Source: Podarcis tiliguerta
Taxonomy: Eukaryota
Reading direction: 5' to 3' (one strand)
DNA: 64,000 nucleotides
NCBI GenBank assembly: GCA_965153285.1
Contig: OZ229115.1
Shown one piece after another: positions 3,431 through 44,100 of the stretch. Made by a program: the position numbers and the translations under genes. Within the stretch, counting starts at the first letter, position 1; each line of letters opens with the position of its first letter. The notes beneath the pieces are model-generated. The model had not been told where the DNA came from and searched no databases. It worked only from the letters and a program-made list of their open reading frames with translations.

Positions 3431-3610
3431 NNNNNNNNNNNNNNNNNNNNNNNNNNNNNNNNNNNNNNNNNNNNNNNNNNNNNNNNNNNNNNNNNNNNNN
3501 NNNNNNNNNNNNNNNNNNNNNNNNNNNNNNNNNNNNNNNNNNNNNNNNNNNNNNNNNNNNNNNNNNNNNNNNNNNNNNNNNNNNNNNNNNNNNNNNNNNN
3601 NNNNNNNNNN
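3431..3610. other. Assembly gap (180 N)
   Basis: Run of n characters. Confidence 1.
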
Positions 3611-33497: not shown

Positions 33498-33878
33498 GCT
33501 TGTAAGTTTGAGAGAGATTTGAGAGACAGAAGAGGTCTCACAAAGAATGGCTATCTTTATATGGAAGCTAGAGAACCCATAGCTGACTCCACCAATTCTG
33601 CTTGGCTGCTAGACGACTGCCGAGTTCAGGTTTGTTTTCAGAGCGTGCTTGTTATGGATAATGTACTCTCAGCATGTTGAGGGGTCATATGGAAGCATTT
33701 GCCTCTTTCCTGGCAGCCAAACAAGGTAGCAGCTGCTTTGTGCTTTCATTCAATGCTGAACTAGGATGTGCCTGAAGTAATGGGAGGGATTAAGCCCTGT
33801 GCCTTTAGTCCCTCCTGTACTCTTGTTGCATGTCTCATCTTCTGGCCTGGAGAGTGGCTCCAGGCAAATCTCACTGAC

Positions 33879-34004
33879 CTGGCAGATTTTCTGGGTGAAG
33901 TTCTCTGCTTCCTCTTTCCTCAGTTGCCTCTCCTGGGAGAGCTGTTCTTGTAGGCCCCTCAAGCTCTCATTAGCCTCTGAAAGGACCAGTTGCAATTCTT
34001 TGAT
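33879..34004 (-). CDS. SOGA1: SOGA1 exon IKELQLVLSEANESLRGLQEQLSQERQLRKEEAENFTQKICQ
   Basis: ccccgcag|ATC...CAG|gtcagt; 126 nt. Confidence 0.95.
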
Positions 34005-34096
34005 CTGCGGGGAATAGTTTAATCAAAGCCAACAACAGTCAGGTATGTCATCCTTGCAAAAACTAATCTCTCCATGTGTTTTTTTTAAAAAATATT

Positions 34097-34102
34097 TTTA
34101 TT
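34097..34102 (-). terminator. Candidate intronic poly(A) signal for the hydrophobic-tail isoform
   Basis: AATAAA on the minus strand about 600 nt after the TAG at 34699, inside the short intron 34005-34431; adjacent genomic A-run is a caveat. Confidence 0.35.
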
Positions 34103-34431
34103 AAAGGCCCATGGAAGAACAGCCAGCTTCTTGCAGGGAGTGACCTTGGCCTGTATGTAACACCCTGTTGTCATGGTGAGGAACCTCCGATCTGTAGGTC
34201 AAGTTAGGCCCATTAGGCTATTTCCCGAGTCTCCAGCCACGTCCACCTGTTTCTCACTTGTCATGTGACATTGGGATAGGTAACACAAGATTTGTATATG
34301 GGCCATGCCATTCTTTTTCCCATCCACATGAAATGTGTTGATCTAGTATTTCTGCAGTCAACTTATTCTCCCCAGAGTCTCCAGCCTTCTTGCCTCCCTT
34401 TGGGAACATAATCCCATACTTTGACACCTAC

Positions 34432-34605
34432 CTCAGCCACATAGGAGTCCTTCTCCTCTGGTTGATATGACTTGTAGCTCCTGTCAAGTTCCATGTTGGG
34501 ATCCACATCCATGGTGGCGGTGCTGTTGCTGCTGCTACTGCGGTAGAGATCAGAGGTCCTGCTCTCCGTGATGTCCCAGTCGGGGGGCTCCCTAAAGTCA
34601 GACTG
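34432..34605 (-). CDS. SOGA1: SOGA1 exon QSDFREPPDW...EKDSYVAE
   Basis: tgcag|CAG (NAGNAG, alternative start 34602), donor GAG|gtaggt; 174 nt, phase 0/0. Confidence 0.9.
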
Positions 34606-34698
34606 CTGCATGCATGGGTAAGTTAATGAGAACAAACCAAAAGAGCAGAAAAGAAAAGAAAAAACAAACAAAACAATGGGTCTCAGGAACAATAAGAG

Positions 34699-34800
34699 CT
34701 ACAAGACAACAAAAAGGATGAAGAGGAGGAGGAACTTCACTACCGTGGCAGAAGACAAAGTGGAAAACAAAAGGAGACACAAAATGAGCAGACACGTGGG
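34699..34800 (-). CDS. SOGA1: Alternative terminal coding segment of SOGA1: SOGA3-like hydrophobic tail PTCLLILCLLLFSTLSSATVVKFLLLFILFVVL*
   Basis: Acceptor ttttttccctctctctcttttcccccctccccaaacaatccag|CCC with a 74-nt AG-free zone; phase 0, in frame with the upstream exon; 33 codons then TAG; colinear with the recalled SOGA3 C-terminus. Confidence 0.75.
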   Translation of the reverse strand, partial: PTCLLILCLLLFSTLSSATVVKFLLLFILFVVL

Positions 34801-35572
34801 CTGGATTGTTTGGGGAGGGGGGAAAAGAGAGAGAGGGAAAAAATGTGCAAACACCAGTTATGGTGCCATGCAGTGCCTGGGGTGGGGCTAGTTGAGGGAG
34901 GAAGGGGGGGCAGGAGCATGCACAAAAATAGAACTCTGAAAAACTGGAGTGTGCTTCAGGAGGTTGCAACCCTTCCCCAGATCCCCTTCCCTTTCTTAGG
35001 TCTTACCTTAGATCAGAAGCAGCATGTACCTGGCCTCCTGGCAACAGCAGCAGTATCGTTTACCAGAAGGGATGAACTGGAAGGGAGCCTGGTACTGTGT
35101 GGGCACATTGGTGGCACCAATGTGGTGCTGTTGCTGATGCAGCCCATACAATGCCACTACCTGCAAGCAGTAGCAATTCAATTGCCAGGAGGCCAGGTGT
35201 GCAGTGATGCTCCACTAGCTGCTGTTGTCCTAGACCAGTCTTCTCCAACTTAGTGTCCCCCAGATGATGATGGACTGCAGCTGGTACTAAATAATTCTTC
35301 AGCAGCAGCTGTAATGTGGTTTCCACTTCTCAAAGCAATCTTCCTCCTGCCTCATGCACACTCCACTAAACCAGAGTCCTACCTTGTCACTAGCCACAGT
35401 TCCATGCAGTGAGCCAGTTGTTAGTTGTCATTTCAGAAAAGAGAGGCAGAAAAGGGAAGTTACATTAACAGGGCCAGGTTCTGATTTGTTAAAGCAGGAG
35501 AAAACAGCATGGGCAAATAAAGCAATAATCACTGCCAGGAAGCTACTGTTGACATCTCAGGAAAAGCCTCAC

Positions 35573-36802
35573 CTGGAATTCAGAGCCATGAGCTTTCTGC
35601 AGAGCCTCTTTTGTGGAATCCTGGGAGCTGGCGCTTGGCAAGGAGTCCTTCAGGTCTTTCAGGTGGTCTCCAATGTAGTCCACCTTCCTCATGAAGGTGT
35701 TTAGCTCCTGCTGAAGGACCCCAAGCCTCATCAAAATGGCACTGATCAGCTTAGAGTCAGTCATACTCTCATTATCCATGGCTTCGCTCAGCACCAGCTC
35801 TGCACAGTCATTGTCCATGCAGAGCTTGAGACTGGAGGTGAAGCCATTGGCATCAGAGATCAGGACATCAATGGCTTTGCTGACAAGCGCAGCCTGGTCC
35901 CTGATGTCAAGGAGGGTCTCAAGGTCCTTGGACTTGAGAAGCCTGCAGGGGCTGCTTTCATGCGACTTGCTAAAGCCATTGCCAGGTGCTCTCTCCTTGG
36001 CATCATTCTCTCCCCCAATGGGCACCTCTCTCCAAAGCGACGTTGGGATGCACTGGGCAGAGTCACCAGCCTCAGCATCCGTCTCCAGCATGGGCCGAGT
36101 GGTCTGGCAGGAAGCAAGGTCACAGCGCTGCAAGTTGGAGAGCAGGACACGGTTCTCATACTGGAGCTTCTTAACCTTGCCACTTAGCTCACTGATTTGG
36201 ACCTTGGCCGTGGCCAGTTCTTCTTGGGAGGTCTCACTAATCACTGAGCAGCTGTCCTCAGACAGAGTGATGTCCAGGTCATGGTCTGACTTGTACTTAT
36301 TGAGCTCATTCATGAGGAGCTTGTTCTGCTCCTCCAACTCCATCAGCGAGCGCCTCAGCAGTTCTGCCTCCTCCTCCACAAACTGCAAGTGCCGCCTAAG
36401 CTCCACCACACTGTCCCCAGAGTCCCCGCAGTTTGTCATGGAGAAGGCAAACCGGATGTCTTGCCCTAAGAGTTCTTTGTCTCCTTGGCCCCTCATGTCT
36501 TCCATCTCTGCCCTCAGCCCTCGGTTCTCAACCTCAAGCTCTACTATCCTCCGGCTCAAGATGTTGGCTTCTTCCTCTACAAGCTTCAGGTGGACTTTTA
36601 GCTCTGCCTCTCTGGAATGAGGGGAGTCAGCCAGTTCCTCTATGGAGAGGGAGCTCTCCAGGTCCCCATACAAGGATCTGTACTTCGTCAGCTCCTCCTT
36701 CATACTGTCGTTCTCTTTGGCTAACTTGGTCAGTTTCTTGCACATCAGAGCAGATTCCTCCTTAGCAAAATGCAATTGACACTTGAGGTCTGCGCTGTCC
36801 TC
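35573..36802 (-). CDS. SOGA1: SOGA1 large coiled-coil exon EDSADLKCQLHFAKEESALMCKKL...AHGSEFQ
   Basis: atgctag|GAG...CAG|gtgagg; 1230 nt (410 codons); ORF 35543..36775; SOGA-repeat motifs (LQFVEEEAELLRR, LSGKVKKLQYENRVL). Confidence 0.97.
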
Positions 36803-41341: not shown

Positions 41342-43431
41342 CATAATAGTCTTATTCATATATTTAAGTGCAGCAGACCAATATAGGTGAACAGGAAGTC
41401 TAAGAACTCTCAGGAAGAATGAGGAGACTGGGAATTCAAACAGACTCAGATTACAGTGTATAAACTTTCTCCTAGGACGTGACATCCTCCCTACAGATAA
41501 TTATTCTCTTTGCCTGATAATAGAAGTGTCAGAAAAGGGAAAGCACTGATGCAACACGGACTAGATCGTCTTTCCAGATGTTCAGATAGTACTTCTTATA
41601 ACTGTACAAATGGAGGATCTTCAAAAGGACTGCTTCAAACATTGTAAATTCCCACCTGGAAAGCACTTCATATGCGTTGCCTAATATTTAAGCTCTGCTA
41701 AAATACCATTAATAAAACTCACCCATCAACCCACACCCAGTTCAGAACTCTTCCTAGGGTGTGGTGGAGGCTAATGATTATGACCCTATCCTTTCATCAA
41801 CATTTATGGTATATAAAGCTGCAGTGTATATTACAGGACAAACCTTGGTCTTAGTTACACCAGCATTTGTGGGAGACATGCCTATAATTATTTCTGTGAA
41901 GATGATAAGTCTATCACTGCTTCAATCTATCGTGTGCTATAAGCATGCATAGGTGCTATTGTTCCTTAAAGGTATCTGGACAAAAGCATGAATATACTTG
42001 CCAGATCACTGACAACTAGCCAAAATGAGGAAGGTGCGAAGTTTCAGCAGAACCATGCATATTTCCCTCAGCTATTTTTGTAACAAATGGTTGTATTCTG
42101 AATTCAATTTTAATTTTGGTTTCAATTCGGGCTTCGAGAGGGGCAGGAACTCAATTTAAAAATTACCAACGCAACGCAATGGACTGGAATTCATTCCAGC
42201 TTTGTTTTATTCTGTCACCAAGCTGTTTCCTTTGCATCACTGCTTCTTTCTAATGCCACCCCCCCTGGCATTATTACAGGGGATTTGGATAATGTATTCC
42301 AGATATTCCACTGCTACTCAGGGTCAACCAACGCAATGCAGAGCATTTAACCACTAGAATCCAAGAATCGAATGCAAAGGCAATTTTAAAATAAAAATAA
42401 AAATTGCCAGCCTGTTCTTCTACCTGATTAAAATGTGGTCAGTACCTTTCCGTATAAAAAAAACAAATTGCACAAGCACAGAAACAAAAATGCCACTGGT
42501 GCACAGTTTCAACATCGGCTTTTATCCTTTGCATCATGGTACCAGCTGCACTTGAGGGCATATAGGATAACCTTTCACTTTTCAGAAAGTAAAAATATTT
42601 ATTTGCCAGAGAATGTTGCAACTGGTAAATATGCCGAAGCAGGTGGACATGCTAGAACATTTGAAAATCCTATTCCTCTTACAGCGCACACCTCTGCTTG
42701 AACCCTAACAGCTAAAAGTGGCATCCTTTGCAAGAGAACAAGGCAGGGCTCTCTGCTTTGCTTGCCTACAAAATAAATAAAAATCCCGAACTTGCACTGC
42801 ATACCAGCACAGTGGGTCCACTACCCAGGCCTCTATGGTGAGAAAATAATTAGGGGCAATGGTCAGTTCTATACCCTCCTTATCTTGAAAAAAGATATTC
42901 GCACAGCTTTCTTGCTAGGGGGAATAGGGCTGGCTCCCCATGCCAGGTCATGCACACAATAAGCTGAATATACCTAGTCCAGGGAGATACATCCCAACAG
43001 CTGGTGTTAAGACAACTAAGGCAAATATGTTTGCTAAGGCAAACACATTCCACATATCTGTTCCTCAAGAACTGAAGACCAGCCCAAATGTACATTTTGA
43101 AGTAGCCAGATGCTAAGTCAGCTCACTGTTACATATAGACCATTACCTACTGGTCTATTACTCAGACTAGCTGTGGTTCTCTGGGTTATGATCATTCTCA
43201 GCCCTGTTAGCAAAGTTCCTTTTCACTAGAGGTGCCAGGGATGGAACTTGGGACGCTCTTTATGCAAAGTGTGTTGTTCTACCAGTGAGCTGCAGGTTCT
43301 CCCTTGATGGGGTTAAGAGAAAGAGAACGTTGTCCTCAGGTACAAGGTGAAGCAACTACATAAGTGCCCAGCAGTTCAGCCCTTACGGCAAGCAAATTTG
43401 GCAAGCTGCTTTGCAGGAAGGTGTTAGGTAC

Positions 43432-43494
43432 CTGAACAGATGACTTCTTGTCTGTCTTCCCAAGAGAACGTGATCCTCTTTTCTTCAGAGAATT
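43432..43494 (-). CDS. SOGA1: SOGA1 exon NSLKKRGSRSLGKTDKKSSVQ
   Basis: ctgtttcag|AAT...CAG|gtacct; 63 nt, phase 0/0; matches recalled human HSLKKRGTRSLGKADKKTLVQ; too short for the ORF track. Confidence 0.93.
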
Positions 43495-44100
43495 CTGAAA
43501 CAGAAGAGGTAATGCGAAGGATAGTTATTTACTGAATTTATTTCCAGCAAAGTTTTCACAATACGTTGCACACATTGATCAAAATTATTTTTTTAAGTGA
43601 TGAATCTGTTAAAGTGGTAATGAGTTTAAGTAATATGAGCCCTTCATTAATGAAAGATTGAGCCAGTCACCAGCTGGGAGTACTTTTAGGGGCTTCCTTG
43701 TTTTGTTTTTTTGTTTGTTTTTTTAGCTTTCTACATTTTTACTCCCAGAATCACATACGAGTTTAATTCTGTATGTTTAGTATTTATTGAATGCCACATA
43801 TAATTTAGCAACAAAATTAATGGCACTGTATTATATTGTAATGTCTCAGATATTAACTTTGTAATAATCTTTCAGCACACACAAAAATGAAATTAAAAAA
43901 ACTAGAAAATGAGCTGAGTGCTATTAACAGGCACGAGTCCTTAACATATTCCTCCTTCTTTTCTATCACTGTGCGTTATCCTTCACCCACAAATTTCTGT
44001 AGAAACTGACAAGGCTGGAGTCCATAACAGTCTGGGATTCCACTCCCCCACCCAAAAAAAAAGAGAGTATTTCTGCCCAACAGCAATAGTATGCATAATA

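Follow-up and report, generated by a model that had tools for sequence, protein, structure and literature searches.

MTCL2 (SOGA1) is studied as a soluble coiled-coil protein, by which microtubules are linked to the Golgi through partner proteins, and the divergence of the SOGA paralogues is usually assigned to the genome duplications of early vertebrates. The MTCL2 paper attributes the association with the Golgi to the N-terminal coiled coils and reports minor bands which may be splice forms; a membrane anchor is not described in it. The paralogue SOGA3 (MTCL3) has been tabulated as a membrane protein. A literature search on SOGA1/MTCL2 returned no description of a membrane tail.

The C-termini of the family could be compared by using a phmmer search against 1.84 billion representative proteins, in which a 401-aa piece of the large coiled-coil exon of the lizard gene described below (1230 nt) retrieved SOGA-family proteins. 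Five of these proteins ended in a very hydrophobic C-terminal tail, which was of the SOGA3 type in four: P0068 from lamprey, the SOGA3-like proteins P0048 of Alosa and P0024 of Colossoma, and P0079. The lamprey tail was nearly identical to the teleost SOGA3 tails, an unusually strong conservation for a membrane anchor. The Alosa SOGA3-like isoforms (P0048, P0177, and P0178) differed by just 0, 1 or 2 residues, located right before the M-F-Q-P motif, and this indicates that the tail of SOGA3 is encoded by its own last coding exon, which begins with that Met. The same isoform differences suggest that the upstream exon ends in alternative donors lying close together.

The lamprey SOGA-family models P0068, P0172, and P0173 represent one locus with either a short tail-ended product or a long one. 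P0068 (861 aa, tail-ended) and P0173 (1526 aa), which come from two species and two annotation pipelines and were compared as protein models, were identical up to residue 825 and then diverged, and the extra half of P0173 could be aligned colinearly with the C-terminal halves of MTCL2 and of MTCL1-like proteins, the matches being weak but significant. From these models, an ancestral arrangement with two outputs at one locus, a short tail-ended protein and a long protein, is credible.

A further arrangement concerns human KIAA0408, which we take to carry PF14818, as in the C-terminal half of SOGA1 and SOGA2; our own domain look-up for the C-terminal half revealed sub-threshold leads only. If the homology of KIAA0408 is true, SOGA3 and KIAA0408 would be a split version of the SOGA1 layout. 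According to a preprint, human MTCL3 and the downstream KIAA0408 make up a complex locus in which a read-through RNA, a decay candidate, connects the two.

The lizard locus analysed here can be compared with both systems. The shared N-terminal half of the lamprey locus, followed by either the tail or the MTCL-like half, is the either/or layout that we propose for the lizard; however, lamprey has a SOGA3-type tail, whereas the lizard tail sits in SOGA1/MTCL2. The lamprey models split at the position of the lizard tail, which places the tail at an old switch point in the family. The human locus, where read-through can join a tail-ended gene for the N-terminal half to exons further downstream, is similar to the lizard layout, although MTCL3 and KIAA0408 are treated as separate genes.

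Host gene and anatomy of the tail segment

Most of SOGA1/MTCL2 is present on the minus strand of the 64-kb stretch of Podarcis tiliguerta DNA that was analysed (the window). Protein-to-window mapping of the Podarcis muralis protein P0243 distributed residues ~330–1749 over 13 exons from 55324 to 13228, the first ~330 residues being located outside the window. The two largest exons had 98–99.5% identity to the SOGA1/MTCL2 proteins of Podarcis, Lacerta, and Zootoca. The coiled-coil exon (35573–36802, minus strand) consisted of 1230 nt or 410 codons, was in phase 0 at both ends, and contained the Pfam SOGA domain PF11365 (E 7e-59, 197 bits against a cut-off of 31). Based on PF11365 and the lacertid identity, the gene is SOGA1/MTCL2. 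One exon (43402–43503, minus strand; Podarcis residues 380–413) had 71% identity compared to 88–99% in all other exons; this may reflect a divergent exon, an alternative exon, or an artefact of local alignment. Positions 3431–3610 of the window consist of 180 N, which represent an assembly gap or a masked stretch.

The 1230-nt exon terminates with E-F-Q, an ending conserved across SOGA1 proteins from many species, which is followed by gtgagg with the donor gt at 35572–35571. The intron extending to the canonical next coding exon was 967 nt long. This canonical exon (34432–34605, minus strand; 174 nt, phase 0) starts with Q-S-D-F; its acceptor lies at 34607–34606 with 34605 as the first exon base, and its donor gt is at 34431–34430.

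Within the 967-nt intron, the initial annotation had pointed out a second acceptor 195 nt upstream of the canonical one, in phase 0 and in frame with the 1230-nt exon, and had translated a 33-residue peptide and a stop from it. Re-examination of the coordinates reproduced the acceptor, its frame, and the peptide. An AG-free zone with a long pyrimidine tract (34801–34877, minus strand) closes with cag at 34803–34801, so that the candidate acceptor is 34801|34800 with 34800 as its first exon base. The nearest preceding AG is at 34878–34877, leaving an AG-free stretch of ~74 nt. Pyrimidines occupied 35 of the 41 positions from −45 to −5 at the candidate acceptor versus 30 of 41 at the canonical acceptor, and a branch-point-like 'cataac' could be found ~55 nt upstream of the candidate AG. 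The offset between the two acceptors equals 65 codons and both are in phase 0. With its pyrimidine tract, AG-free zone, and preserved frame, the candidate has the make-up of an alternative 3' splice site.

The tail segment (34702–34800, minus strand; 99 nt) consists of 33 codons and ends at a TAG stop at 34701–34699, the same position as the stop in SOGA3-type tails. The segment is 75% pyrimidine, and its peptide contains two hydrophobic runs with a Ser/Thr-rich linker and one Lys between them. A T-rich spacer of 93 nt (34606–34698, minus strand) separates the tail stop from the canonical exon; it provides the canonical acceptor with its pyrimidine tract and branch region and is open in the frame common to the tail and the next exon. 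The tail TAG itself lies in a good acceptor context, a T-rich tract followed by tag|C. If this third acceptor at 34699|34698 were used, 31 mostly hydrophobic in-frame codons would be added to the normal protein.

The start of the segment does not coincide with that of the SOGA3 exon. A SOGA3-style start (M-F-Q-P) is absent in the lizard, where the equivalent acceptor triplet is caa, one change from cag, and offers no AG. The lizard acceptor is located 9 nt downstream of the SOGA3 exon start with the frame kept, and this comparison suggests that the acceptor has shifted by 9 nt from a SOGA3-type position. The in-frame codons immediately before the lizard acceptor (34801–34812, minus strand) read T-I-Q, in parallel to the M-F-Q of SOGA3, and the last 11 bases before the acceptor are A-rich. 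The lizard tail starts 3 codons later than the SOGA3 tail, and the F-Q-P motif is regained across the junction via the F-Q at the end of the 1230-nt exon.

Homology of the tail segment to the SOGA3/MTCL3 anchor

Alignment of the lizard tail against the SOGA3-type tails of lamprey and teleosts revealed 18–20 identical residues out of 33 (55–61%) without gaps and with the stops in register, and the BLOSUM62 scores were 80–89. None of 200,000 composition-preserving shuffles of the lizard tail reached the observed values; the best shuffled identity was 16 and the maximum score was 67, the scores having a mean of ~7 and a standard deviation of 11. When all stop-free 33-mers from the six frames of the whole window (29,851) were scored against the Alosa tail, the tail segment ranked first with 89 versus 38 for the runner-up. 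The SOGA3 tail cited in the initial annotation agrees with the database tails P0048, P0068, and P0024 at 34 of 36 positions. The alignment to SOGA3 C-termini that the initial annotation called for gave the expected outcome with database sequences, and its view of the segment as a homologue of the SOGA3/MTCL3 tail, placed where the coiled-coil half gives way to the C-terminal half and in the frame of the 1230-nt exon, holds. Judged from these alignments, the tail segment is almost certainly homologous to the SOGA3 anchor.

The SOGA3/MTCL3 tail and the lizard tail belong to the same family, follow a Pfam SOGA domain, and are placed right after the coiled-coil half; the two hydrophobic runs, the S-x-L-S..T..K linker, and the stop position are also the same. 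However, the SOGA3 tail is the constitutive end of the protein with its own 3' UTR, whereas the lizard tail would be an optional 5' extension of an internal exon. The lizard tail is far more diverged than the SOGA3 tails are mutually (~90% or more from lamprey to teleost). Unlike the SOGA3 tail, it is absent from all fetched annotation; it is an anchor tail of the SOGA-family kind, and SOGA1/MTCL2 is not known to carry one. An intact frame and 55–61% identity since the early vertebrate duplications indicate that the peptide has been under purifying selection for a long time in the SOGA1 lineage. The peptide itself appears to matter, because unselected sequence would not keep the frame, length, stop, and identity for that long.

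A C-terminal tail with two hydrophobic runs and a Ser-rich linker was also present in P0141, a transcript-derived, distant SOGA-domain protein of 1364 aa, which shared only 9 of 33 identities with the lizard tail. Based on the layout of the P0141 tail, the anchor may be older than the vertebrate paralogues.

The hydropathy of the lizard peptide was comparable to that of the SOGA3 tails. The Kyte-Doolittle mean over the 33 residues was 2.41 for the lizard tail versus 2.38–2.40 for SOGA3 tails, and the maximum of a 19-residue window was 2.53 versus 2.48. Full-length MTCL2/SOGA1 shares the gene and the N-terminal coiled coils with the proposed tail form but is devoid of a strongly hydrophobic stretch, its best 19-residue window being ~1.0–1.3 compared to ~2.5 in the predicted tail form; it also carries the C-terminal microtubule-binding half, which the proposed tail form would lack. 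The polar linker and the Lys split the tail, and its hydropathy fits a single span and a hairpin alike. The anchor would take the form of either a single span of ~20 residues preceding the Lys, in which case the C-terminal 11 residues would be buried as well, or a hairpin.

The collection of ~400 fetched SOGA1/MTCL2 proteins covered lizards, snakes, turtles, crocodilians, birds, marsupials, amphibians, and fishes, and included the listed isoforms of Podarcis, Zootoca, Lacerta, Anolis, Pogona, snakes, turtles, alligators, ratites, marsupials, and frogs; no tail and no strongly hydrophobic stretch could be observed among them. A protein search with P0004 produced no tail-bearing short form among the best 120 of 1993 matches, these 120 all being long forms, and the members listed in protein clusters (up to 15 per cluster) did not include a short SOGA1/MTCL2 form. 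The phmmer search with the 401-aa piece retrieved SOGA3-type tails and no SOGA1 protein with a tail. Only genomic read-through ORFs were obtained when the last 132 residues of the 1230-nt exon were used as the query. A 51-aa ORF from the stretch 33700–36800 retrieved no protein, a result that carries no weight given the length window of the search. Gene-prediction pipelines commonly drop transcripts carrying premature stops, and for this reason the absence of the tail from protein sets is weak evidence.

Transcript layout and competing readings

The nearest poly(A) hexamers after the tail stop are located at 34018–34102 on the minus strand (AATAAA from 34102 and ATTAAA from 34023), and both of them lie in the intron that follows the canonical 174-nt exon. 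No AATAAA or ATTAAA was present in the ~590 nt between the tail stop at 34699 and 34103, and the next coding exon begins 94 nt past the tail stop. The segment is without the poly(A) signal soon after the stop that marks an alternative last exon, and is laid out as an alternative 3' splice site. With the stop 94 nt before a coding exon and no hexamer nearby, a normally spliced mRNA would contain a premature stop and would be a likely target for decay. Since ordinary splicing makes the stop premature, a productive isoform would further require that the donor at 34431 is bypassed and that the transcript ends at a poly(A) site within the intron.

On balance, a productive membrane-anchored isoform in current use is probable by a modest degree, as predicted from the layout and conservation of the segment. 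The 99-nt segment is, in this reading, the SOGA1/MTCL2 copy of the SOGA3/MTCL3 membrane-anchor exon, kept at the ancient switch point where the N-terminal coiled-coil half meets the C-terminal half that binds microtubules. In the normal mRNA, the acceptor 34606|34605 is used and the tail segment is skipped. Present-day splicing to the upstream acceptor 34801|34800 would add 33 hydrophobic residues, after which translation would stop. The 1230-nt exon ends at residue 813 in the Podarcis numbering, and the tail product, provided that its mRNA is stable, would have ~846 residues. Such a product would keep the Golgi/CLASP-binding coiled coils, would be without the C-terminal microtubule-binding half, and may be inserted and held in a membrane, putatively of the Golgi or ER as the initial annotation proposed, via a tail anchor or a hairpin. 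Use of the isoform is opposed by the position of the acceptor 9 nt off the SOGA3 start, by the A-rich composition of the preceding 11 bases, by the lack of a tail in the ~400 SOGA1/MTCL2 models, and by the premature-stop layout.

The same observations would be accounted for if the segment were a silent relic, that is, a true homologue of the SOGA3 anchor which was used in the SOGA1 lineage through most of vertebrate history and is unspliced now; this seems unlikely. It would mean that splicing has been lost in this lizard, perhaps in amniotes, and that the segment is intact from too little elapsed time, a course of events which we also regard as unlikely. A T-rich frame of 99 nt could remain uninterrupted for tens of millions of years once it is out of use. 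The isoform is annotated in none of many RNA-supported gene sets, the acceptor is displaced by 9 nt with the SOGA3-equivalent triplet being caa, one change from cag, and the tail has neither its own 3' UTR nor its own poly(A) signal, all as would be expected of a relic. However, the segment has kept its frame, stop position, linker motif, and Lys intact, the AG is preceded by a clean AG-free zone and a strong pyrimidine tract, and the absence from protein sets counts for little, as transcripts with premature stops are commonly dropped.

The premature-stop layout could also be the function of the segment. In this case, the upstream acceptor would be used mainly to introduce a premature stop, leading to nonsense-mediated decay and a lower MTCL2 output, which we consider rather improbable; that little or no anchored protein is made, as would follow from such a switch, is rather improbable likewise. 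More than 10 exon junctions lie downstream of the tail stop with no poly(A) hexamer nearby, and the comparable read-through RNA of human MTCL3-KIAA0408 has been called a decay candidate, in agreement with an unproductive switch. Nevertheless, an insert serving purely as a stop does not need 55–61% identity, equal length, and an equal stop to the SOGA3 tail. A chance origin, in which a pyrimidine tract happens to translate to Leu/Phe/Ser-rich SOGA3-like text, is extremely improbable and was rejected, because in spite of the 75% pyrimidine content and the position in the splice-signal region of the next exon, 0 of 200,000 same-composition shuffles reached the observed identity or score, the other T-rich open stretches in the window scored at most 38 against 89 (rank 1 of 29,851), and the strand, intron, frame, and stop are all as expected.

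If the productive anchored isoform exists, it could fix MTCL2 oligomers directly to the membrane, or could be a natural competitor of full-length MTCL2, and either role, if true, would change the reading of MTCL2 localisation and knock-down data. The segment itself also provides a simple evolutionary account, in which the anchor exon is the point where SOGA3 ends and the long paralogues continue. It is possible but doubtful, on the present comparison, that vertebrate MTCL2/SOGA1 generally has an unannotated tail-anchored short isoform produced via a conserved upstream acceptor. If this were true, the whole SOGA family would have one ancient switch between a membrane anchor and a microtubule-binding half, and SOGA3 and KIAA0408 would be the case where the two outputs became two genes.

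A minor observation concerned the genomic neighbourhood of the gene. No ACSS2 match was present in the 64-kb window. Acetyl-CoA synthetase (ACSS2) proteins fall into the 90% cluster of Pogona MTCL2 (P0218) as well, and the bridge appears to be a fused model of 2268 aa from Phrynocephalus. This hints that MTCL2 and ACSS2 are neighbours in agamids.
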